The notes beneath the pieces were generated by a model. The model was not told where the DNA came from. It was given only the letters and a program-made list of their open reading frames with translations, and made no database searches. From positions 1 to 29,864 of the forward strand of contig JBBHKD010000020.1 of assembly GCA_037447605.1 (NCBI GenBank): a stretch of 29,864 nt of DNA, given 5' to 3'. Of this stretch, positions 6,301 to 27,764 are shown one piece after another. The translations under genes were made by a program, and so were the position numbers. How positions within the stretch are numbered: the first letter of the stretch is position 1; every line of letters starts with the position of its first letter. The stretch is from Zygnema circumcarinatum SAG 698-1b. Taxonomy: Eukaryota > Plantae > Zygnematophyceae.

Positions 6301-6828
6301 GCCGCGCGCGCGCTCCGGCGCCCGCGCCCACCCGCCCGCTCCCGCGCCCGCGCGTCGCGCGCCCTCCGCTCCCCGCTCCCGCGCCCGCGCCCCCGCCCGC
6401 GCCCGCGCCCGCGCCAGCCCGCTCCCGCTCCTCCTCTGCGCCCGCGCCAGCCCGCTCCCGCTCCCGCGCCCTCGCCCGCGCTCGCGCCCGCGTCTGCGCC
6501 AGCCCGCTCCCTCGCCCGCGCCAGCCCGCTCCCTCGCCCGCGCCAGCCCGCTCCCGGGTGGTTTCAGGGACTTGGCCACCATCTGTATCCGCCACACGGC
6601 TTTAATGTAACATGCGCAATGGAAAGAATGTGCTCTGCATTCCGCATTTTGCACTCTTTTTTTTTTTTTTTTTTTNNNNNNNNNNGCCAGCCCGCTCCCG
6701 CTCCTCCTCTGCGCCCGCGCCAGCCCGCTCCCGCTCCCGCGCCCTCGCCCGCGCTCGCGCCCGCGTCTGCGCCAGCCCGCTCCCTCGCCCGCGCCAGCCC
6801 GCTCCCTCGCCCGCGCCAGCCCGCTCCC
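6256..6828. repeat. GC-rich low-complexity array (CCCGCG / GCCAGCCCGCTCCC units); ~6413-6675 is duplicated at 6686-6948 across a gap
   Basis: Direct inspection; the near-identical copy after the N gap includes the unique tail and the poly-T. Confidence 0.85.
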
Positions 6829-10002: not shown

Positions 10003-10479
10003 TGTAGCAGCTTCGCTATACATGTGTTATGTATGACCTAGTACCCACATCCTTGATTTGCCTTTTAATATGGTAAAAAGCAACCTTTAGGTGGAGTACC
10101 GGGGGTCGAGTTCGAACCTTACAGTTGGCAGGTTTGTTACATTGGTATCAGAGCCTAAGGACTGGTATTTGTAATCCACCCCAAAAAGACCGTGATCTCT
10201 GAGCATGACGGCTTGGCTGACTAATCACTAGCCAACAATGACCAGAGGGTCTGAACCGTGAGGGGGCATGTGTTGAAAGAGCTTGAATGCAGCTCGTGAA
10301 AACCCTTAAGCATGGTCTCGAGGACGAGCCCGATTTAGGTGGGGAGGAATGTAGCGAAACGCTATACATGTGTTGTACGGCCTAGTACTTACATCCGCGG
10401 TTGCCTTTTAATGGTAAAGCACTTAGGTGGGTACCAGGAGGTCTTGAGTTCGAACCTTGCAGTTGGCAGGTTTGTTACA
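10003..10479 (+). mobile_element. Complete TRIM with tRNA-derived LTRs (LTRs 10003-10141 and 10350-10479)
   Basis: LTRs TGTAGC...GTTACA; PBS TGGTATCAGAGCC (tRNA-iMet) at 10143-10155; PPT AGGTGGGGAGGAA before 10350; perfect 5-bp TSD CTGGT at 9998-10002 and 10480-10484; ~208-bp non-coding interior. Confidence 0.93.
10397..10468 (+). promoter_or_regulatory. tRNA-derived module in the TRIM LTR (Pol III A/B-box-like; not a functional tRNA)
   Basis: D-arm-like CTTT-TAATGGT-AAAG, 5+7+5 anticodon-like arm, variable loop AGGTC, T-loop GTTCGAACC (10448-10456). The acceptor stem pairs poorly. Confidence 0.75.
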
Positions 10480-10899
10480 CTGGTCCAAGCTTTAGAGGAG
10501 ATCAGCACGCCTAAGAGCGGAGGAGCTGAGCCGGAAGCAACGCCAAACGTGGAGGCAGCCGTGGGAGTCGAACCTGAGGAGCCTCAAGCGGGAGAACCGC
10601 ATCCTTTGACGGAGACGGCACCACTACACACTCACCTGTCCGACGAGGAGAACTCGGCCAAAATTGTACCTTTGCATGGGCAGGAGTTTGAGGATTTGGA
10701 GACGGCTGAGAAAGAGGCTATGTTGTCGAGCATGCCTCCTGGGTTTGTCTCGAGGATTTTCTTCAACACAAGGAGCCGGAGAGCGCAAGGACCTCGAAGG
10801 AGCACCCGTGTGGTGAGGAGGCCTGATCATTACAGGCCTTTGCAGACTAATCTAGTACAGGAAAGAGTGCCTACAAACTCAGCAGACCTCGCGGGAGCT

Positions 10900-11881
10900 G
10901 CCCACTGTTTTATGATCACCGAACCGCAAACCTTTGAGGAGGCGCACGACGGGGTTGATGGAGAGAAGTGGCGAGCAGCGATTGACAGCGAGTGGGACAG
11001 TTTGCTGGAGAATGGCACATGGCGACTTGAGGAGCTGCCGAGTGGAAGGCGAGCCATTGGATGCAAGTGGGTGTTCAAGGTGAAGCGAAAGGCGGACGGG
11101 AGTGTCGACCGTTACAAGGCGCGTCTGGTGGCGAAGGGCTTCAGCCAAGCGTACGGAATCGACTACACAGAGACCTTTGCCCCCGTGGTGAAGTTCAACT
11201 CCTTCCGTGCCCTAATATCAATTGCAGCGACCGAGGGGATGCATGTACATCAACTTGATATCAAGACCGCATTTCTGTACGGAGATCTCGCGGAGGAGAT
11301 CTACATGGTACAGCCCGAAGGGAAAGTTGTCCCGGGGCAGGAGCATCTCGTTTGTCGTCTTGTAAAAAAATTGTATGGACTGAAACAGGTGCCCAGGATT
11401 TGGTACGAGAAAATTGATGACCTCCTGAGGAGTAACGGATTTGCGCGATTTGAGACGGATCATTCCGTCTACCGACAAGGGGAAGAGGCAGATCTCATGT
11501 ACGTTGGGATCTACGTGGACGACCTCATAATGGTGAGCCTCTCATTGGAGATAATCAATGATTTGAAGCAGCTTTTGGAAACTAACTTCAAAATGTCGGA
11601 TCCAGGGGAGGCGCAGTATCTCCTAAGAATGCAGTTGAAGAGGGGGCAGGACGGCAGCTTATTTCTTTGTCAGAAGAAGTACGCCGCAGATGTACTTGCC
11701 AGATTCAAAATGGAGGAGTGCCGTCCGTGCACAAGTCCGATGGAGATTGGAATGCGATTGTCGAAAGATATGATGCCTGCGACAGATGCGGAGGTACAGA
11801 GAATGTACGGAGTGCCGTATAGATCGGCAATCGGGAGTTTAATGTACCTGATGATAGGTACTCGTCCTGACTTGGCAAAAG
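10900..11881 (+). pseudogene. pol: Copia-A reverse transcriptase (open to the gap)
   Basis: EPQTFEEA, KARLVAKGFSQ, QLDIKTAFLYG, YVDDL, RPDLA in ORF 10339-11964. Confidence 0.96.
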
Positions 11882-11891
11882 NNNNNNNNNN

Positions 11892-12201
11892 ATTCGCGCC
11901 GTCCGCGACGAAATCTCCGTCGTCGCATTTCCGCGCCGTTCACACTTGTCCGCGTGGCTGCTGACTCGGTCTCCTCCGTAGTTGACCTCGTCAGAGTCCG
12001 CGGACCGCACTAAGGGTCTGACGCGGGTCCGCCGACATCACCGACATTCTCCGTGCCCGAAAAGCGTACGGGCCACCGACATTTGGCCCAACCGTATTTC
12101 CTAGGACTACTACTAGCAGATCTCATGTTTCCCAACTGAGGACCACAACAATGTTAGTGTGAACCCATACAATGTCTAACTATAGCACACTAACACTAAC
12201 A
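11892..12201 (-). mobile_element. 5' part of a TGTTAGTGTTAG-family LTR, minus strand
   Basis: Revcomp from 12201 reads TGTTAGTGTTAGTGTGCTATAGTTAGACATTGTATGG, homologous to the LTR start at 18641; abuts RNase H IGYTDSDW. Confidence 0.8.
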
Positions 12202-13994: not shown

Positions 13995-15064
13995 TGTTAG
14001 TGTTAGGCTAGTTAGGAACTTGTAAATACACTAAGTTGTTTTGGTACTAAGTTCTTAGGGGTGTGCTCCTAGTCCGAATTGCATGTAGGACCGCCTAAGC
14101 GGCAGGTACAAGTCTTGAGGGGTGTGCGGCGTGGCGCTGGAATCGGCGAGCGAGGGTGTGCGGGCGTGGCGGGTGTCACCCGGCCATGAGGCCCAGCAAA
14201 TTAGTCCAAGCCTTGGCAGTCTTGAGTCTGGGCGCAAAGCGGCGAGTGCGTGCATTGAAGTCTTGTGGTGACAAGCGGCGCTGATTGGTGCGTGCTTGGC
14301 CAGCCTTGTGAAGACGCGAATGCAGACCTTAGCGACTTGATGATAAGCGCTTGAGTCCTTGAGCGCAAAATTGCGGCGCGCCGCGGCGAAGAATATAAGC
14401 GGCGAATACGCGGCAGCGCCAGCGTGAACACTCGTAGCGAGTAGGTCGCTGGCGGATTTGTCGTACGGCGAAATAGCCGGCGGACAAAGTAAGCTAAAAG
14501 AAAGCAAGCTGGCGGAGTATGCGGACAAGCGTGCGAATAGACAAGAACTAGGTCGGTGCTGTCGTAGGTTTATGAGGCGCACTAGCTGGTCGCTATTCCT
14601 GAGTGCGCCCACTGAGATAGTGCATGGGCTTGCAAATGGCGGACGAGACGTGACAACTTGTGTCACGTCACACGGCCATTGTTGTATATGATGGAGGTCT
14701 GATTTGAAGGAGTTAACCTTCTCGGGACTCACGTAGGCAGTGAGGCTATCTTTCTTTGGGCTTAGAAGATAGTGGGAAGTGTTCAGCTTGTAGTGGGGTG
14801 GTGTAATCACGTAGCTTGAGTTTAGGTGCTTGAAGCTTGGCTCTAGAGTTGTCAAGTTGTATTCATCTTTATATCAAGGAGTTTTAGGCAGGAGGCTTTC
14901 TCCTTACATCTTTTCATTTCCGCTGATCTGTTCTACTGCATTCAGTCTTGTGTGTGTGTCTACATCCTTGAGGAGTGTGGTTGATCAAGTCATTGAAGAT
15001 GTCCAGCTCTACCGAGGGCAGAGGAGAAGTAGCAGCACCTCGCACGGAGGCCGCTGCACCAACA
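13995..15064 (+). repeat. Complete 1070-bp LTR (TGTTAG...CCAACA) preceded by a PPT and followed by a PBS
   Basis: TG...CA ends; PBS TGGTATCAGAGC at 15067-15078. Confidence 0.92.
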
Positions 15065-16387
15065 AGTGGTATCAGAGCCGAAGGCGTCGACGACGTGAAG
15101 TTTACCATTCCGACTTTCGATGGGAAGAACTACAAGCGGTGGAAGTTTCGCATGCTCACGGTGTTGGAGAACAAGCGACTGTTGGGGTATGTGGATGGCT
15201 CCACTGTGGCCCCGGATTCAGAGACCAACCCTATAGAGTTTGAGCAGTGGAGGGTGAAGGATTGTAAAGTTAGGACCTTGCTTTGTGCTGGCGTTAGTGA
15301 GGACCCGACAGATCTGATTTCAGAGTTAAAGACAGCTCGAGAGATGTGGGATACGTTAGAAAAGATCTATGATGTAGTAGATAACGCCACTGTAGTTTAT
15401 CTCTACACGGAGCTAGGAAAACTCAGCTTGGAATCAGGGGAGGATCTTAAAGACTATGTGATCAAGTTTGATAATCTAATGCAAAAGTTTGATGGGATGA
15501 AACAGTCCCTTCACTTGGATCACAAGATTAGTCTGTTCCTAGGAGGCTTACCGGACAGATTTGACCCTGCTTGCACTGCCTTACGCACTCAGCTTTCTAC
15601 AGCAAAGATGACCTTTGAGCAGGTCAAAAGGAGAGTGATAGAGGAGGATGGTCTTCAAGAGCGAAGCAAAAGCGAGGTCGAGGATTCAAAGAAGGTGTAT
15701 CTTTGGCAACAACTTGGCGCCCACATACGAGGAGCGGCAAGGGGACCAAGCACTGGCGGAGATGGTGGAAGCTGAAGACTCAAAGACTTGCTACTCTTTG
15801 TAGGAAGCGGTCACTTGAAGGCTGCCCACGAATTCGAGAGGCGGTTCCGCCTCGAATGGAGATGCTTCGAAGGAGCAAGAAGGGAGGGGGGGTGATGGCA
15901 GGTATCCCAGAGATGATCGCAGGAGGACTCACGAGACGAATTTGATGTTCACAGATTGGGGAAGTGATGATGAGTTCGTAGGGTGTGTTCGAGTTCAAGA
16001 TTCAGCGAAACCTTGGGTGATTGATTCCGGTGCTTCAAGGCACATGTGCGTGGACGACTCACTCTTTGCAGAGAAGCAGACTTTGGAGGGAACCCGCTCA
16101 GTCTACTCGGCAACAGGACAAGGGGTCATGGTGACGCAAAGTGGAACGATCAGGTTGGAGGTGCTCGGGGAGAGAAGCACGCAGAGGGTTGTCAACGTTG
16201 GTAACGTACTGCATACTCCCGGATTACAGATTAATTTCCTCTCTGTTAGTCAGCTGTGTGAAGAGGACTATGGAGTATGGTTTGAGAAGGGTAGTTGTGA
16301 GGTTATTCACAAGGAGACAGGTCAGGTCTTGTGCAAGGGAATTCAGCAAGGTGGGCTTTACTTTCTAGAGTGGAAGGAGGCTCAAGG
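14999..16387 (+). pseudogene. gag: Gag-protease ORF copy with a frameshifted (probably mis-sequenced) patch at ~15660-15850
   Basis: Identical to 16506-17887 outside the noisy patch. Confidence 0.85.
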
Positions 16388-16505
16388 NNNNNNNNNNGGA
16401 GGCTTTCTCCTTACATCTTTTCATTTCCGCTGATCTGTTCTACTGCATTCAGTCTTGTGTGTGTGTCTACATCCTTGAGGAGTGTGGTTGATCAAGTCAT
16501 TGAAG

Positions 16506-18113
16506 ATGTCCAGCTCTACCGAGGGCAGAGGAGAAGTAGCAGCACCTCGCACGGAGGCCGCTGCACCAACAAGTGGTATCAGAGCCGAAGGCGTCGACGA
16601 CGTGAAGTTTACCATTCCGACTTTCGATGGGAAGAACTACAAGCGGTGGAAGTTTCGCATGCTCACGGTGTTGGAGAACAAGCGACTGTTGGGGTATGTG
16701 GATGGCTCCACTGTGGCCCCGGATTCAGAGACCAACCCTATAGAGTTTGAGCAGTGGAGGGTGAAGGATTGTAAAGTTAGGACCTTGCTTTGTGCTGGCG
16801 TTAGTGAGGACCCGACAGATCTGATTTCAGAGTTAAAGACAGCTCGAGAGATGTGGGATACGTTAGAAAAGATCTATGATGTAGTAGATAACGCCACTGT
16901 AGTTTATCTCTACACGGAGCTAGGAAAACTCAGCTTGGAATCAGGGGAGGATCTTAAAGACTATGTGATCAAGTTTGATAATCTAATGCAAAAGTTTGAT
17001 GGGATGAAACAGTCCCTTCACTTGGATCACAAGATTAGTCTGTTCCTAGGAGGCTTACCGGACAGATTTGACCCTGCTTGCACTGCCTTACGCACTCAGC
17101 TTTCTACAGCAAAGATGACCTTTGAGCAGGTCAAAAGGAGAGTGATAGAGGAGGATGGTCTTCAAGACAAGAAGCAAAACAGGTCAAGTTCAAAGAAGGT
17201 GTATGCGGCAACAACGCGCCCATACAGGAACGGCAAGGGACCAAACGCAGCCAGAGATGGTGGAGAGCTGAAGACTCAAAAGACTTGCTACTCTTGTGGG
17301 AAGCCCGGTCACTTCAAGAGGAACTGCCCCGAATTTCAGAGAGGCGGTTCACCCTCGAATGGAGATGCTTCGAAGGAGCAAGAAGGGAGGGGGGGTGATG
17401 GCAGGTATCCCAGAGATGATCGCAGGAGGACTCACGAGACGAATTTGATGTTCACAGATTGGGGAAGTGATGATGAGTTCGTAGGGTGTGTTCGAGTTCA
17501 AGATTCAGCGAAACCTTGGGTGATTGATTCCGGTGCTTCAAGGCACATGTGCGTGGACGACTCACTCTTTGCAGAGAAGCAGACTTTGGAGGGAACCCGC
17601 TCAGTCTACTCGGCAACAGGACAAGGGGTCATGGTGACGCAAAGTGGAACGATCAGGTTGGAGGTGCTCGGGGAGAGAAGCACGCAGAGGGTTGTCAACG
17701 TTGGTAACGTACTGCATACTCCCGGATTACAGATTAATTTCCTCTCTGTTAGTCAGCTGTGTGAAGAGGACTATGGAGTATGGTTTGAGAAGGGTAGTTG
17801 TGAGGTTATTCACAAGGAGACAGGTCAGGTCTTGTGCAAGGGAATTCAGCAAGGTGGGCTTTACTTTCTAGAGTGGAAGGAGGCTCAAGGGCTGAGCAGT
17901 CCCGCCAAGGATCCTGTAGAAGAACCCATTCACCATAAGGTAGATCCAGAACAGCTTGGAGGAGGAAAGGGGATGCTAGAGCAAGCTATGAGGCTAAGGG
18001 GAGCAGGGGATAATTTCGTGAATTACATTTCAGATAGCCAGGCTAAGGGGGTTGAAAGACCCATCACCAAAAGGGTGGACATTAGTAGTGGTGAGAATGT
18101 GTGCGAATTCCAG
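16506..18113 (+). CDS. gag: Copia-type Gag-aspartic protease polyprotein lacking IN/RT/RH (TR-GAG-like); open to the gap
   Basis: FDGKNYKRWKFRM Gag N-terminus, CYSCGKPGHFKRNC knuckle, WVIDSGASRHMC protease and GGLYFL, then unrelated sequence. ATG lies within the LTR; PBS at 16574-16585. Confidence 0.9.
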
Positions 18114-18123
18114 NNNNNNNNNN

Positions 18124-20170
18124 TCTTTCTTTGGGCTTAGAAGATAGTGGGAAGTGTTCAGCTTGTAGTGGGGTGGTGTAATCACGTAGCTTGAGTTTAG
18201 GTGCTTGAAGCTTGGCTCTAGAGTTGTCAAGTTGTATTCATCTTTATATCAAGGAGTTTTAGGCTGGAGGCTTTCTCCTTACATCTTTTCATTTCCGCTG
18301 ATCTGTTCTACTGCATTCAGTCTTGTGTGTGTGTCTACATCCTTGAGGAGTGTGGTTGATCAAGTCATTGAAGATGTCGGCTACGGCGAGAGAGGAAATG
18401 CTTGACACCTGCATGCGAGGAAGGCGGCTGCACCAGCGGTAATGTCATCTCATCGTTGGAGCAGCGAACTCGATGGAAGGTGATCTCGCGAGGTGGAGAA
18501 GCGGTAGCGATTGGAGTCCTGCGCCCAACACAAGGCTGCGGACATGGTAGGCAAAGGGGTCGTGAGGAGACACTCTTAGTGAGCAATGACGAGGTTGATT
18601 GGGCTAGGGCCCATGAGGAAGGCTGAGTCCCAAAAGGGATTGTTAGTGTTAGTGTATATGATAGTTGGAGCATTGTATGGCACCTGCTTAACTTGTTGTG
18701 GAACTCGGTTGTTGGCATTGAGATCTGGCAGGCGTAGTGCTCTTGGAATTTAGGAATATGATTACTTTCACTTTGGTAAGATGCGCCCTTGAGAGTGCGC
18801 GGAATGCAAACAACGGCGGCTTGATTAGTCGCGACGACACAAGTAAGTAGATGCGAGCGGCGCAAAGCTTTGATTGGTGAGGAGCGCGGCACCAGTTAGT
18901 GAGAATGCGGATCTGGCGTGACTCGATTAGTGGCCTTGTATATAAAACATGGAGGAAGCGCGCAAAAATCTTGGCCAGCGAAGCGACATGGAAGATATTT
19001 GGCGGCGAACGGAATGGCGTGACCACTCATGATGTGGGTCCATGAAGGTTAGAAGTGTATGGCGAGATAACCGGCGGGCAAGAGCTAGCGAAGGAAGCTG
19101 GCAGCGGCAAAAGCATGCGGGCCGGATATGCGATCCAGGCAAGAACTAGGTCGGCGTAGGTTTACAAGGCTGTTGGTCCAGCGTTATTTACGAGTCGCGC
19201 CGGCTGGGGACTTCGGTAAATGGGTTTTGCGATGGCCCGGTTAGCGGCGTGGCGTGTATTGTGCGTCCGCAGTCTACATATTATATAGTGCTTGGATTTT
19301 CTTGTGGGGGAGTAACCCGCCCAGCGCTCTTTCTGTCATAGTCACCGGGTCTTGTCCGAGACACTGCTTTCGTCTTCAGCCCAGAGCACGCCTACAGCAG
19401 TAATGCGTGAGGTGGTAGTAAGAGGGACCTTGAAGTAGTGGGAGGGGAACTTTGGCCAATGGGAGAGAGCAGGTTTTATTATAAGGAGTTTTAGTAGCGA
19501 GCTTTCTCCACAACAGCTCTCTCTTTGTGATTTCAGTTGTGCTTGTCTTGTAGCTTCATTACATTTGTTATGGAAGTGATGAGGTATGAAGTAAGATAGA
19601 GCTTTGAGTGTTTGAATGTCTGTCACATGGCGAAAGCAGTATACATGGGTTGTATGGCCAAAATCTTTAAATCAGCGGTTGCCTTTTAATGGTAAAGCAC
19701 TTAGGTGAATCTAGGGAGGTCACGAGTTCAAACCTGGCGGAGGTAGTGGTTTGTTATTGTGTCGAGCCCCTGGGGTGGTATTTGCAATCCACCTAAAAAC
19801 ACCGTGATCTTTTGAGCATGATGCGGGAACCCGTCCCTCGGTGGCCTTGGGGATTGAGGCCGTAGTCAATGTTGGAAGGAGCTTGAGCGGCTAGCTGCGT
19901 GAAAAACCTTGGCCCCAGCCGGCTAGAGGGGGCGAGCCCGGTTTTAGGTGGGGAGAATGTAGCGGCTTGCTTCTCGTGGGTTGTATGGCCAAGTACTTAC
20001 ATCCGCGGTTGCCTTTTAATGGTAAAGCACTTAGGTGAATACCGGGAGGTCCTGAGTTCAAACCCTGCTGGAGGTAGTGGTTTGTTACATCATCCGTGGG
20101 AACTCAAGTTCCAATGGAGGGCGACACCCGAGGTGGCGCCGGAAGTGGGGAGCAGACCCCTGCTTCAGCA
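18124..20170 (+). mobile_element. LTR 3' part (18124-~18437), ~200-bp interior with PPT, and a sister-family LTR (18641-20170) carrying a TRIM
   Basis: 18124-18378 matches ~14750-15003. CTAGGGCCCATG..AAAAGGGAT precedes TGTTAGTGTTAG at 18641 as it does at 13995. The LTR ends CTTCAGCA at 20170. Sequence is noisy. Confidence 0.7.
19628..20089 (+). mobile_element. Second TRIM with tRNA-derived LTRs (3' LTR 19958-20089; 5' LTR noisy, ~19628-19756)
   Basis: Same GCGGTTGCCTTTTAATGGTAAAGCACTTAGGTG...GAGTTCAAAC core, homologous interior and PPT AGGTGGGGAGAA. PBS degraded; TSD not cleanly seen. Confidence 0.85.
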
Positions 20171-20651: not shown

Positions 20652-21419
20652 TTATGGATGGTTGCTCTCCACCAGATTACACCTTGCAATGTCCATGAGG
20701 GACTTGTTCATTCTCTCCGCAACTCCATTCTGCTGCGGTGTATAAGGGGCAGTGAATGCCTGCCTTATACCTGTCTCTGCACACATCTGTTCAAAACTCA
20801 TGTTTTTTAATTCGCCCCCATTGTCAGTCTTTATCCTTTTCACTAACTCTCCACTCTCTCTCTCCACCTTCGCTTTCCATCCCAAAAAGGCTTTGAAGAC
20901 TTCATGCTTATGCCAGATCATCCGCACCCAAACTTTCCTACTGTAGTCATCAACAATGGTGAGGAAATAGTGATTGGTGCTAATGCTCTCAACATCTGAT
21001 GCACACACATCCATGTGCACATGCTCCAAACGTTTCCTTGTTCGAATGGTCTCATCCAACCTCTTTAATGCTTTCTGCTTCAACTTCCCTTCTTCACAGC
21101 CTTTGCAACTATGCTGCATTTCCTTACTGCTCAAAGTCTCCAATCCTGCCACCATCTCCTTCTTACTCATTGCTACTAACGACCTCCAACTGAGTTGGCC
21201 TAACCTCCTATGCCATAAATCAGCATCTGCAATGTATGCTCTCAACACATGTGACTCTATAAAATTCCTTCCTTTCTTGCCTCTTGCACATCTAACCCTA
21301 TAGAGATTCCCATCATCGTATGCCTCCAAACCCAAGTGCCCATTTGGCCTTCTCATTGTGCATCTATCTCCAAAGAAATTAACATTCATGCCATTTCTGG
21401 CAAGCTGCTTCACTGACAT
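20652..21419 (-). pseudogene. pol: Copia-B GAG-pre-integrase/integrase
   Basis: Motifs in ORF 20652-21419. Confidence 0.9.
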
Positions 21420-21874: not shown

Positions 21875-22759
21875 CTAAACTCCTCTTCCGCTAGAGGCTC
21901 CATTTCCTGCTCTAGAACTCCTTGAACTGCTCCGGCAATCCTTGGCAAGATGTCCAGGTTTTCCACAATTGTAACATGATGCCTGCTGGACCTGACCTGT
22001 GCGTCCTCGTCCAAACGATGGACCTCCACGGAAGGCACCCCCTCTTGCTCCACGATCTCTACCTCTGTAGTTAGTTGCGTAGGCTTCCACCTGTTCTCCT
22101 CCATCTTCATCTCCGCTTTGATTGTCGAAGGCCTCACTAGTCTGAGGCCTATGACCTATGAACTTCTAAAACCTCTGCTTATTGTTCTGCTTAGACTCTG
22201 CTGCCCTTAAAATAGCTTTCACTGACTCTACATCGCTCAACTGTTGAGTTTTTATGTTGCCGACATCTCTGGAGGCTCTCTCTTCACAACACCGTAAGAT
22301 CGTATGGATCTGTTGTTCCTCCGAGATAGTTCCCCCTACATCCTCATACTGCCTTACCAGAACTTCAAATCTTAAAATAAACTCATCTATTGACTCTTTC
22401 CTTGATAGACTTAAGGTCGTCAATTCTGTGCAGAGGGAATTTTTCACGGCTATAAACTTCTTCAAATAAATCTCCTTTCGCTTGTCCCACATCTCCTTTG
22501 CAGTATCCTTGCCCCCTAGCAGAATAAGATGCTTCTTATCTACTAGGCTAGCAATCTGATATTTTGCCTCATCATCTAATTCTTGCCATTTCTCCAACTC
22601 TGGTCCTGCCGCCGCTGGTTTAGCAGATGTACCTTCAACGATTTTCCAGCATCCTTTCTTCTGCAGCTTGATCTTGGCGAATATCTCCCATGCTGCATAG
22701 TTAGTTCCATCGAAGAATATCTTTCCTTCATCACTCCGCTTACTCATTTTCGATCTCAC
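21875..22759 (-). pseudogene. gag: Copia-B Gag with one in-frame TAG (22166-22168)
   Basis: ORFs 22166-22759 and 21875-22090 are in the same frame, with no other stop between them. Confidence 0.8.
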
Positions 22760-23332
22760 TCAGAATCACTCACTTGCTTACTCACTTGCTCTCTCAATAA
22801 ATTATCAACCAGCTTTCTCACTCAGCTCTGATACCACATTGTGACAGAAGAAAACACAATCAAGCTTGATGCACAAAACACATGGTCTCACAGGATCAGC
22901 ACATAACTCATAAGCACTTCTTTATTTCATCAGGGGGCCTCAATACAAATTCTCCTCTCTTCTCTCTTCCTCTGTTCTACATCTGCGCAGCGGTACTTTT
23001 CTACTCACTGTCAATGCTTCCAAAATTCTCCTTTCTAAATCCTCCTTCCTGAGCGTCATACATTTCCGACGCTTCGCCTGACATTTCTCCTCCGCCTGAC
23101 ACTTACTCTTCCTGCACAGACCTTCCTGAACTCTCTCACACGCGCAGTCTCTTTTGCCCGTACACATTCCGTACAATGTCCGTACACGTGTCCTTACACC
23201 TGTCCGTACAGGGGGTCCTCGTCATATTTTCCACCTTCAACAGTGCGTCACCAATAAATTCGCACCGATTTTGCCGAAACCACCTTTTTGTACGGTAACT
23301 TCGTGTTAGCCGTACTATTCGTACTATCCGTA

Positions 23333-23369
23333 CCCTAAAAACCCTGAAACCCTAAAAACCCTAAAACCC
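23333..23369. repeat. Interstitial telomere-like tract (CCCTAAAAA, CCCTGAAA, CCCTAAAAA, CCCTAAAA, CCC)
   Basis: Direct reading; variants of plant/algal TTTAGGG/TTTTAGGG. Confidence 0.65.
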
Positions 23370-24037
23370 GTACTAGCCGTACTAACCGTACTAACCGTAC
23401 TAACCGTACTAACCGTACTAGCCGTACTAGCTGTACTAGCCGTTACGGGTTACGCAAAACTTCACCTAATCTCCCCGCACGTGCCGCCGTAGGAGGCGCT
23501 CGCTCTTCTCCCCTTCTTTTTGGCTTCGATACGATACGATACTCCCCGATACAGTACTATCCGTACTAACAATACAGTGGGGGGTCCTCGTATTTACCAC
23601 CCCAAAGAATGCGTCCTCAATATTTTCGCCCCAATTTTGCCGAAACCACTTTTTTGTACGGTAACTTGTGTTAGCCGTACTATTCGTACTATCCGTACTA
23701 TCCGTACTGTCCGTACTGTCCGGCGCTCGCTCTTCTCCCCGTCTTCTTGACTTCGATACGATACGATACAATATTATACGGTCGATACGATACGAAACTC
23801 CCCGATACGGTACTATCCGTACTAGCCGTACGAGCTGTAGTAGCCGTTACGGGCTCGAATTTAAACTCTCCGAATTTTCCCGCCCTTGCCGCCGCGAGAG
23901 GCGCTCGCTCCTCTCCTCTTCTTCTTGGCTTTGGCTTTGTCTTGCTGCTGCAAGCTCATCAACACACACAGTACACACACACACACACAGATCACACAGT
24001 ACATCCACCATCAAAAGAAGGCGGCACGATCTCTTTT

Positions 24038-26333
24038 ATGCGCTTATACCATGGAGGAGGAAAATCCAACAGTGAAGGAGGCAGCACCACCGCGGAGGTG
24101 CTGAGGGAGATACGAACGCTCCTGCCACCTGGAAGCGACACTCGATATCGAACAGCTCAGGTTGCGCTGGCTTACATTCGTAATCTTCTCTCTACTTCAT
24201 CTCGTCATCGATTTGAAGTGTACGACCCACCAGGTGATGGCCACTGTGTCCTTCGGTGCGTAGTAGCTTCCCAATTCGGGTTTGAGAGGAGCAAAGACAC
24301 GGACACTATTTGGGAATTGAGGTCGAAAATCAGCGAAGTTCTTTGTGCCAATGTGGAGTCGTTCCTTGATGATGGAAGCTTAGACATCATGTTGCTGGAG
24401 ACAGATCTGTCTCTGGTTATTGATAACTTAGACGCGGATGAGAAGAAAATGTTATGGGGCTTATATTGTGACGAGTTCAAGGAGCAGTACCCGGACCACC
24501 AACCTCTGTATGCAGGCCATGCATCACTTCTTGCCATTAAGTACTTCATTTTCCCAGAGAAGTGGATAGTGTTTGTGAGTACACAGATTAAAGGCGGTCA
24601 ATCAGAAGATTCTTCATATCTTATTGGCTCTACAATGGTAATGCAAGATGAATCAGAGTTGGTTGATGACTGTAATCTAGTACTTTTACTTTATATAGAC
24701 TCCATTCAGCATGCGTGTCTTATCTATGAGGTGACGACTGACGAGAATGGTGGAGCAGTCGAGCCACAAAGCACTTCTCATCAAGAACAAACGAAGACTG
24801 TCCCTCAAACTCTTCCAGGCATTTGGTCATATAGTGCGAAGAGCACCTTCTTCAATGGCACCATCAGACGTCAGAGAGAAAGGAAGGCGAAGGTGGTGCT
24901 TTCACATGAGATGAAGCTGGGCCTTCTTAACGATATCAACAGATATGGTGTGTCAACTCTCTCTGTCGCAAAGAAGTACAATGTCACTCGACGCACTGTG
25001 CAGAATATGTTGAAGCGTAAAGACAAGATCATCGAAGCAACTCTGAATCCGAGAACGACAAACGCAAACACATTCTTGTGAAGCTGAAGTTTCCTACCCT
25101 TGATGCGTTGGTCCAAGCATTTGTCCAGCAACTCCGTGATCAAGGGTTCCTTATCACTTCCCGAATTATTAGAGACTTTGCGCTTGTAATGGCTACAAAC
25201 AAATCTAAGGAAACGTTTGGAAGGATATCCTTTGGAGAATATATACAATATGGACGAAACAAGGTTATTTTACCAGTTGCTTCCCAAGAAAACGTATGTT
25301 ACAATGCGTGAGGATAGAAAAAATATCAGAGGAACAAAGCAGATGAGGTCCAAGGATAGGATATCTTTATACTGTGCGACTAATGCGACTGGTACTCACA
25401 AAATACCGCTCGGTGTAATCGGCAAATCAAAGAATCCAACAGTGTTTGGTAATGGGAAGGAGGCTATCTTACGCGATTTGGGCTTGGCCTATTTTAGCCA
25501 GGCGAATGCGTGGTCCGATGGTTCTACTATGACAAGGTGGCTTCGAGAGGTCTTCCTTCCGGCTATAAAGACAAAGAAAAAGAGCGGCAGGATAGCACTT
25601 TTACTAGACAACTGTGGTCCTCACAATATGAAAGCAAAGGGAGAGAAGACCATAACGTCGAGCGATAGCCTGTCATGTGAAAAGCTGGCCTCCGTGGAGA
25701 ATGTCGATATTCTTATGCTACCTCCGAATGTGACATCCCTTCATCAACCAATGGACCAAGGAGTAATCTCCATGACAAAGAAGAACNNNNNNNNNNAAAC
25801 TCAGCTGAGTCTATTGAGAAGCTATTGCATTCATGGGTGACGATTGAAGACAACCAAGATGTAAGAGAGGCGATCGTGGAAGACTTTGTCGGAGACTTAG
25901 AGCGACAAGCACTCAAGAACTTACCATTGCAGGACCACGAGAATGATGCACAGAATCAAGAGCAACAATCAATGCTTAATGGCAACAAGGAAGAAGAGGA
26001 GGAAGGTGAAGAACTAAACGAAAAAGGAAGCGACCTCCAACATCAAACAGGCTCNNNNNNNNNNCCACTGAGCAGCTTCAACTTCCTGGCTTGGAGGAGG
26101 CTCTCTCTACCCTGAACGATTTTGATACCATGCTGAACAACATGGGAGGTCACGGGTCGAAGGCAATGCTTCATCTTAGCCAGGTAAAGCGAGACTTCAT
26201 TGGTGCTTGGCGAACGGTGAAGAGGGCGCAGACAAAGGCGAAGCCATCTCGACAAACTTTTGTTCAAGACTTCTTTACTGTTCAAGACTTCTTTACTCCT
26301 GAGGAGGAGGAGAGGCGTGAGGTTGTGATCTGA
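24038..26333 (+). pseudogene. OTU-like domain plus pogo transposase (CENP-B-type HTH, partial HTH_Tnp_Tc5, DDE_1 with DDD triad), frameshifted and gapped
   Basis: PGDGHC...LR...YAGHASLLAI...LLLY...QHA (24212-24730), then in frame VVLSHEMKLGLL...VAKKYNVTRRTVQNMLKRKDKI. Downstream frames give NIYNMDET, KDRISL, LLLDN, QPMDQGVI. Start codon and possible introns uncertain. Confidence 0.88.
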
Positions 26334-26486: not shown

Positions 26487-26575
26487 CGCCTTAGCATTTA
26501 CTAAGGCAGCAAGACTGTCTCAGTAGCTGAGGCAGCTACTGAGGCAGTCTTGCTGCCTTAGTAAATGCTAAGGCG
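26487..26575. repeat. 43-bp near-perfect inverted repeat with a 3-nt loop
   Basis: Arms 26487-26529 and 26533-26575 differ at one position, which is a U-G pair on the + strand. Confidence 0.95.
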
Positions 26576-27764
26576 TGAGCTGCTGCTTCCATCTGTTTTT
26601 CGGTTATGTGTATGCGGTTCACCAGCTGATCTTGGCTCATGTAAGCCACCATAAGGTTGGTTGCCACATTTAGCATCTCGCAAACAACGTACCTGCTGTA
26701 CAAGTACAAGTGCAATTACAGTACAGCATATCAAGTAACGTTTGCTGTGTGTCGTGTGTGGAAATCGCCCAGTCTGCATGCAAGGTGCAAAGGAGAGAGA
26801 GAGCGAGCGAGAGAGAGAGAACGGCAGCCCTCGGCAAGGGTGCAACTAACTGCCGGTACGTTGGTTGGATGACGACAATATGTACGACAGTATATGCGTC
26901 ACGATACGTCACGATACGATACGATGCTAAATGATACAGTACGAAACAATACGATATGGTACGGTACGATACGTACGGTTCAACATGAACTCTAACATAA
27001 TACCGCCCGTCTATTCGTAACACGAACCTTATATATGCAAATTTAATATTTTCGCCTCATTTTGCCCGGAACCAGGGTGGAAAATATGAGGACCCCCTAC
27101 TGTATGACCTGTAGTAGCCGATACGGTACGATGCGGTACGATATGACAATAAACGATACGATACGATACGTACGGACATACATGAACATTAACATCATTC
27201 CGCTCGCCTATTGGTAACACGGACCTTCTGTTTGCCAAAAACAATATTTTCGCCCGGTATTTGCCGAAACCAGGTGGAAAATATGACGAGGACCCCCTGT
27301 ATAGCTTCCGTACAGTAGTCCGTACAACCCGCAGCATCATCATCTATCACAGAAGTCGCCGATGATGATGTAATCAGCCGCTGCTCGACAGCACGAACTT
27401 TCCCCGAAACGTACGCTGGAAATGACGTCTCCTACGTCATATAACGGCAATGGATGACGTTAAATTCAATCTGGGCTGTGTCGTTATTCGAACTGCTCAA
27501 ATAGGTTTTTACCACGTGTGAATTGTGTGTACGTGGCAGTTTTATATTGGTAAATTTGCATACCAAGAGGCCGCCAGCCGTGGAGGCTGTGCGCCAGGCT
27601 GACTCTTTCATCCAATGAAACGCTCCAGTTGATCACGTGGTCAGGGGCCTCCAGGATCCGAGGACTGCCATCGTGGACGTATCCTCCAATCACAGTCTGC
27701 CACGTATACATACTGTAGTGCGCCATATCCATCCATGCATACATTCCGTACAGCACGGAACACC

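Follow-up and report, generated by a model that had tools for sequence, protein, structure and literature searches.

Does a cut-and-paste DNA transposon of the pogo type carry its own OTU-type cysteine protease, joined to the front of its transposase? The question is raised by a stretch of 29,864 nucleotides (nt) of contig JBBHKD010000020.1 from the green alga Zygnema circumcarinatum SAG 698-1b (the window, to which all positions refer), for which an earlier reading of the letters alone (the sequence-only reading) had proposed such a fusion. Here, we show that an OTU-like domain and a helix–turn–helix (HTH) domain are fused in one open frame, and that the element in which they lie is a member of the pogo superfamily (IS630-Tc1-mariner). 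We propose, as the likely explanation of the locus, that it is a defective copy of an autonomous pogo-superfamily transposon whose transposase starts with a very divergent OTU (papain-fold, clan CA) domain.

The fused part of the coding region comprises the following features.

24038–25081, forward strand: open frame of 347 codons with the OTU-like domain, a linker and the first HTH domain (ATG at 24038, TGA at 25079–25081)
24200–24730, forward strand: OTU-like domain of about 180 residues (Asp 24236, Cys 24245, ELR 24314, YAGHASLLAI 24509, His 24710)
24890–25045, forward strand: first HTH domain, of psq/CENP-B_N type, sharing its frame with the OTU-like domain (HTH_23, E = 0.008; CENP-B_N, E = 0.013; both under the Pfam cut-offs)

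At 46% GC, a run of 347 codons without a stop is far above chance. Re-reading of the sequence confirmed exactly the coordinates proposed for Asp 24236, Cys 24245 and His 24710, whose codons (GAT at 24236–24238, TGT at 24245–24247 and CAT at 24710–24712) all lie in the frame that opens at 24038; the claim of a single stop-free frame from the DGHC motif via His 24710 into the HTH was likewise borne out, across 24038–25081. The codons GAT-GGC-CAC-TGT encode Asp 24236 to Cys 24245 inside PPGDGHCVLRC. By amino-acid number, the motifs of the frame are DGHCVLRC (67–74), ELR (93–95), YAGHASLLAI (158–167) and SIQHAC (222–227), with His 24710 sitting in LLLYIDSIQHACL. A linker of about 50 residues separates the OTU-like domain from the first HTH, which reads KVVLSHEMKLGLLNDINRYGVSTLSVAKKYNVTRRTVQNMLKRK from 24890. 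The only Met in the frame between the two lies within the HTH itself (LSHEMKL), so that separate translation of the HTH would truncate the DNA-binding domain; the only plausible start codon for the transposase comes from the OTU-like domain. An exact-protein look-up gave no record of the 347-residue protein in public assemblies.

The N-terminal domain belongs to a sparsely represented family. Among 1.84 billion representative proteins, phmmer detected a single relative, P0001 (253 residues, 53% identity, E = 3e-36), which is encoded by an open frame of 253 codons on a 1,404-nt contig of JGI metagenome 3300059473 and is without OTU annotation. A word-index homology search, with either the OTU region or the two-sequence profile of window protein and P0001, returned P0001 alone, and a metagenome scan confirmed no further relatives from its 102 pattern matches. 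P0001 conserves DGHCVLRC, the LR helix and the pattern YAG.A.LLA.K.F..PE..IV.VSTQ.K.

Comparison with known OTU domains points to a common fold. When the whole domain was searched against all Protein Data Bank (PDB) sequences by phmmer, the sole match was the bacterial OTU EschOTU (6w9s; E = 0.56), on the catalytic Cys loop; with the first 77 residues, three of the four matches were OTU domains, namely 6w9s (E = 0.05), 7y5m (the Tacheng tick virus OTU) and 11ny (an L-protein N terminus). For profile comparison, OTU domains were drawn from viral contigs by the patterns DGNCLFRA and PGDGNC, with 13 of the 16 domains in the first set matching Pfam OTU. In hhalign, the profile of the window sequence and P0001 aligned to this first set with a probability of 69% (E = 4.5e-5) over 93 columns, a span that starts at the Cys loop, takes in the LR helix and the YAG..LLA helix and reaches YAGHASLLAIKYF..IVFV, aligned on the OTU W-G-x helix and strand; against 39 OTU domains, the probability was 82% (E = 1.1e-5). 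DGHCVLRC and ELR align with DGNCLFRA and the invariant Arg of OTU domains, and the Cys-loop motif D-G-x-C-[LF]-[FY]-R-[AS] was counted as present. In a MAFFT alignment with OTU domains, His 24710 falls on the invariant OTU His and LLLYID on LGFID.

A good part of this likeness is concentrated in one place. The 10-residue Cys-loop motif accounts for about three-quarters of the profile score, which, together with the lack of a Pfam match, counts against an OTU assignment and would suit a chance motif in an unrelated N-terminal extension. We disfavour that explanation, and consider it very unlikely, on the basis of shuffling controls. The real hhalign score of 39.6 lies above full column shuffles (11.6 ± 2.1) and motif-keeping shuffles (29.2 ± 1.8), none of 150 reaching it, and a hidden Markov model of the 39 OTU domains gave 14.3 bits versus −0.4 ± 2.0 for motif-keeping shuffles, none of 500 reaching the real score. 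The Cys loop thus provides most of the signal, and its surroundings add to it significantly. A query from which the motif was deleted still scored 18.3 in hhalign, with the ELR helix aligned at the right place. Language-model neighbours in the ESM Atlas were OTU for 62 of 100 with the whole domain (score 0.94, 187 shared features) and for 53 of 100 with residues 95–235, in which the Cys motif is absent. Finally, the three motifs stand in OTU order and spacing in the MAFFT alignment.

Structure prediction had been named in the sequence-only reading as a check of the OTU proposal, and its outcome depends on what is supplied. With the 39 OTU domains in the alignment, AlphaFold returned a helical lobe followed by four strands (predicted local distance difference test (pLDDT) 75; predicted template modelling score 0.70), with low confidence for a helical region that separates the LR and YAG helices. 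The best Foldseek matches of this model in the PDB were all OTU, with OTUD1 first (E = 7e-6, TM 0.54/0.66) and OTUD3, DUBA and viral OTUs behind it. Given only the two family sequences, AlphaFold failed (pLDDT 33). Because of that failure, the good model is best seen as steered by its OTU-rich alignment, and as consistent with an OTU fold rather than as proof of one.

Several further results join this failure and the concentrated score in weighing against the OTU assignment. The Pfam OTU model (PF02338), another check that had been named, was unmatched by both the window protein and P0001 at E values up to 10. Neither the two-sequence profile nor P0001 alone found an OTU in the PDB. The C-terminal half alone scored at shuffle level (hhalign 10.1 versus a null of 11.1 ± 2.2). 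The sequence at the His reads HAC, placing a Cys two residues past the His where the usual residue is Asp, Asn or Glu (H-[YF]-[DNE]), and P0001 has Thr in the His column. The OTU-like domain of the sequence-only reading is thus upheld by profile comparison, PDB sequences, the language model and alignment, and is not upheld by the Pfam model, by profile signal in the C-terminal half or by the His position of P0001. We regard the OTU assignment as probable, not proven; that the domain has an OTU-type fold we hold to be very probable, and its activity as an isopeptidase is a tentative prediction to which we give somewhat short of an even chance.

The same points could indicate a descendant of OTU proteases that is catalytically dead and acts as a ubiquitin-binding or protein-interaction module, or has no function. 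The absent acidic residue after the His (HAC), the missing His of P0001, the silent C-terminal half and the unmatched Pfam model would all fit such a domain, as would copies that differ almost solely by amino-acid changes (see below). We nevertheless think it unlikely: both known members, at 53% overall identity, conserve the Asp, Gly, Cys and Arg residues in their Cys loops, the His of the window copy aligns with the OTU His, and some active OTUs lack the canonical third residue. A different use of the same catalytic centre is suggested by Gly-Gly at residues 238–239 (DENGG/AVEP, 24749–24754), 11 residues past the last predicted strand of the domain in the linker ahead of the HTH, after which a self-processing protease might cut itself off the transposase, with deubiquitination secondary. 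OTU-type proteases of tymoviruses and arteriviruses do combine polyprotein processing with deubiquitination. However, Gly-Gly dipeptides are common, P0001 has none at the corresponding place and we know of no cut-and-paste transposase that is made as a self-cleaving precursor, which leaves self-processing with only a slender chance.

The favoured reading, an OTU-type domain at the start of a pogo transposase, also requires the remainder of that transposase, which lies downstream in different frames. These pieces were searched one by one against Pfam, each in its own frame.

25060–25201, forward strand: HTH_Tnp_Tc5, second DNA-binding domain (window frame 1; profile positions 1–45 of 66 present)
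25217–25786, forward strand: DDE_1 catalytic core (window frame 2; Asp 25253, 25607 and 25754), cut by a gap of N
25797–26333, forward strand: acidic C-terminal tail of the transposase, in two frames, one on each side of the N run at 26055–26064 (stop at 26331–26333)

HTH_Tnp_Tc5 matched with 22.8 bits (E = 9e-5) versus a Pfam cut-off of 22.2, and DDE_1 (PF03184) with 92 bits (E = 4.3e-26), the latter profile stopping at position 128 of 177 owing to the N gap. The CENP-B_N and HTH_23 matches of the first HTH, although sub-threshold, are positioned where a pogo HTH is expected. The catalytic Asp triad is found at 25253 (NMDET), 25607 (LLLDNCGPH) and 25754 (QPMDQG), giving D-117-D-48-D; the second interval of 48 residues differs from the spacing usual for pogo, which is 29–42 residues. 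In its TA target site, terminal inverted repeats (TIRs) beginning with CAG, CENP-B_N-type HTH followed by HTH_Tnp_Tc5 and DDE_1, DDD triad, acidic C-terminal tail and derived miniature inverted-repeat transposable elements (MITEs), the element is like the described pogo superfamily (Tigger, Fot, Lemi, Passer and others; PMC7386202, PMC7325037).

Contigs of sequencing runs X5, X7, X8 and X16 were aligned to the element, which reveals copies of at least 85% identity. The sites of interruption are as follows.

25059–25060, forward strand: frameshift site, with one A more in the X5 and X16 contigs
25201–25203, forward strand: internal deletion breakpoint, with at least 144 nt lost relative to the X5 copy, from contig alignment
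25787–25796, no strand: run of 10 N, for which the contigs indicate that at least 216 nt of real sequence are absent, including the end of DDE_1

The TGA at 25079 arises from a run of A that is 1 nt shorter than in the X5 and X16 contigs, where the frame continues, by virtue of the extra A at 25059, into KRKHILVKLKFPTLDAL..., as expected for the beginning of HTH_Tnp_Tc5; window frame 1 after the extra A reads KRKHILVKLKFPTLDALVQAFVQQLRDQGFLITSRIIRDFAL, which is the HTH_Tnp_Tc5 domain. At the second interruption, X5 record 11 aligns up to 25201, leaving 24 nt over, and record 12 aligns from 25203, after 144 unaligned nt. Because the X5 contigs carry this unaligned sequence, the window copy is without at least 144 nt, in agreement with the absent last third of HTH_Tnp_Tc5 and linker. 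Contigs that span the N run at 26055–26064 have 10 more letters, which would bring both C-terminal pieces into one frame. Introns were considered for both frame changes and rejected: at the first, homopolymer length differs between copies; the second coincides with the breakpoint where contigs of the other copy carry extra sequence, and its sole GT..AG candidate is 24 nt. Among the joints listed for the contigs of the four runs, none within the coding region was splice-like, and the low-depth coding contigs of X7, X8 and X16 show ratios of end to interior depth of 85 to 480, the same order as in the DNA run (~600).

With breaks at 25059/25060 and near 25202 and with two N gaps, the window copy has no intact single transposase frame and is defective. 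In the X5 copy, a separate loss of 1 nt at 25151 leads to a stop at 25187, and no intact copy was found among the window and contig copies, which counts against our explanation of the locus. The pogo transposase gene of the sequence-only reading accordingly holds as an architecture (OTU-like domain, HTH and DDE_1 within TIRs) and fails as an intact gene. A comparison of non-synonymous and synonymous change across copies, also put forward there, adds a further adverse point: 14 of the 15 substitutions between the window and X5 copies are non-synonymous, so these recent copies are not under selection and the present copies decay neutrally, as inserted transposon copies do. More generally, the 30 kb hold ten runs of exactly 10 N (at 6676, 8062, 11882, 12845, 13371, 16388, 18114, 25787, 26055 and 29009). 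Two of these differ from the real length in public contigs, which is at least 216 nt at 25787 and ~20 nt at 26055; N runs thus hide sequence of other length, and frames that cross them are untrustworthy.

The contig copies also bear on whether the OTU-like part is a passenger, that is, a captured fragment of a host gene that is in frame by accident and has no part in transposition. Gene capture by DNA transposons is common, and coding copies are only a handful, both of which would allow a passenger. Family copies without the segment, which the sequence-only reading had pointed to as the sign of such a capture, were not seen: at 85% identity or above, the run contigs contain no OTU-less coding copy. 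For run X5, the two parts, OTU and transposase, have one contig each, at similar depth (~70–240). The X16 contigs are diverged by ~3% across both parts and those of X7 and X8 are identical to the window, from which we infer that several alleles or copies share the OTU–transposase architecture. The presence of the domain at equal depth in every coding copy detected, the location of the only plausible transposase start codon within it and the 253-codon open frame kept by a homologue of 53% identity all argue against a passenger, as does the search of 1.84 billion representatives, whose one match is not annotated as OTU and which offers no similar host-type OTU protein. We consider a captured fragment quite improbable.

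Where the element ends, and what it has given rise to, can be read from its termini.

23207–23236, forward strand: outer left end, with TA at 23207–23208 and then a TIR starting CAGGGGGTCCTCG (30 nt, 100% complementary to 27272–27301)
23573–23602, forward strand: inner left end, with TA at 23573–23574 and then a related TIR starting CAGTGGGGGGTCCTCG (pair 90%)
27075–27105, reverse strand: inner right end, with the TIR at 27075–27103 and then TA at 27104–27105
27272–27301, reverse strand: outer right end, with the TIR at 27272–27299 and then TA at 27300–27301
23209–23960, no strand: left terminal region common to a very abundant MITE family, from contig depth
26844–27299, no strand: right terminal region common to the MITE family, from contig depth

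The TA-flanked TIRs that had been noticed around the frame are confirmed; for the perfect complementarity of the outer pair, 0 such matches are expected by chance. The subterminal sequence behind the two left TIRs is much alike by eye (23237–23330 versus 23603–23700). The inner TIR pair probably represents the true ends of the coding element, and the simplest reading of the arrangement is that this element is nested in a MITE of a sister family, to which the outer ends belong. The outer TIR pair with its subterminal sequence (23209–23572 with 27106–27299) resembles a separate MITE of ~560 bp, with the coding element inserted at a TA.

Word depth in the X5 contigs is 9,000–61,000 over 23244–23960 and 26844–27275, versus ~100 inside the element, and in many contigs the left and right ends are joined with ~3,000 nt skipped, at varied breakpoints (23805>26862, 23837>26893 and 23931>26901). 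Skipped interiors together with deep ends are the pattern of internally deleted, non-autonomous derivatives; the ends of a MITE family that is very abundant in this alga therefore come from the element family, its likely autonomous source. Contig depth in the region peaks within the outer MITE arm, at a telomere-type tract resembling (CCCTAAAA)n (~23332–23380), where the contigs have many variable loose ends. Microsatellites, CA-rich and GA-rich, lie at the inner borders of the MITE-common arms (23960–24000 and 26787–26827), and contigs vary in length there (X5 record 10 has 19 gaps). The element's 3′ untranslated part contains a perfect 43-nt hairpin palindrome (26487–26575; 98% complementary, 3-nt loop), which the loose end of one MITE-type contig at 23859 (GCTTTTTGGTTTGCTGCCTCAGTAAACGCT) resembles.

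On the basis of this architecture, we propose that the two HTH domains would bind the TIRs and the DDD core would cut and paste, as in other pogo elements, with the OTU-like domain carried along with the transposase to excision and integration sites. The most likely role of the domain would be to remove ubiquitin or a ubiquitin-like modifier. One possible target is the transposase itself, which might thereby be shielded from ubiquitin-dependent turnover; others are repair or chromatin factors, through which ubiquitin signalling at excision double-strand breaks might be tuned. By analogy with proposals made for OTU and Ulp1 domains in Ginger1, Helitron and Mutator elements, a stabilising or break-tuning use seems likely. 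Beyond this, one may predict a recently active green-algal pogo lineage with a single OTU–HTH–HTH–DDE polypeptide and a working deubiquitinase (or ubiquitin-like protease) needed for efficient transposition, a prediction that we regard as doubtful.

Proteases of this kind recur in unrelated DNA transposons: Mutator elements have Ulp1, Helitron-like elements have OTU, Ginger1 has either of the two and an IS5-like transposase bears a C19 protease; to our knowledge, nobody has demonstrated their function. Mutator-like KI-MULEs encode an Ulp1 (C48) clan CA protease for ubiquitin-like modifiers, whose role in transposition is unproven, and differ from the present element in both protease family and transposon superfamily. 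A close parallel in design is Ginger1, a group of animal DDE elements whose Gypsy-integrase-like transposase carries an OTU domain, alternating with Ulp1, at the C terminus (Bao, Kapitonov and Jurka 2010, PMC2836005). Further examples given in that paper are Helitron proteins with an OTU domain, Mutator elements with Ulp1 and an IS5-like transposase that bears a C19 ubiquitin hydrolase; the role proposed there for such domains is in ubiquitin-regulated DNA repair. As in Ginger1, an OTU cysteine protease and a cut-and-paste DDE transposase would share one polypeptide; unlike in Ginger1, the transposase here is a pogo one from a green alga (DDE_1, CENP-B-type HTH) and has the domain at its N terminus, and the domain is too divergent for Pfam, whereas the Ginger1 OTU matches PF02338. 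Helitron-like elements have gained OTU at least twice (HELIANO paper, PMC11417382). They, too, carry it on a DNA transposon upstream of the transposition enzyme, but that enzyme is a rolling-circle RepHel, not a DDE transposase, and their OTU is often a separate or fragmented gene. With cellular and viral OTUs (OTUD1, OTUD3, DUBA, EschOTU 6w9s and the nairovirus vOTU), the domain shares a D-G-x-C-[LFV]-x-R Cys loop with a following LR helix, an aromatic-(A/G)-G...L-x-A helix, a putative His strand at the C terminus and a predicted alpha/beta layout, and it differs from them in an identity of ~10–20%, in having no Pfam match and in having no acidic residue two past the His.

Full-text searches found no literature linking OTU with pogo or Tigger elements, in keeping with the statement of the sequence-only reading that no OTU–pogo fusion was known. 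An OTU domain on a transposase as such is already described for Ginger1 (PMC2836005). Because the principle is known from Ginger1 and Helitron-like elements, what is new is the pogo pairing, the N-terminal position, the algal host and the extreme divergence. If the doubtful prediction of a working deubiquitinase in a recently active pogo lineage were true, DNA transposons would have recruited OTU independently for a third time, with Ginger1 and Helitrons as the earlier cases. OTU would then be tied to the element behind the amplification of one of this genome's most abundant MITE families, which would suggest that DNA transposons in general have to counteract ubiquitin-dependent control by the host. 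The pogo case would add an independent example in the best-understood and easily assayed Tc1/mariner–pogo world, in which one protein reconstitutes transposition. As OTU domains this divergent escape Pfam, proteases borne by transposable elements are probably under-counted.

The surroundings of the pogo element form a transposon-rich stretch with many fragments of Copia-type retrotransposons. Copia-type pieces lie on the forward strand at 10339–11964, 14975–15775 and 16482–18140 and on the reverse strand at 20652–21419 and 22166–22759, with matches to RVT_2 (E = 2e-73), gag (E from ~1e-21 to 1e-26) and integrase (E = 6e-14).

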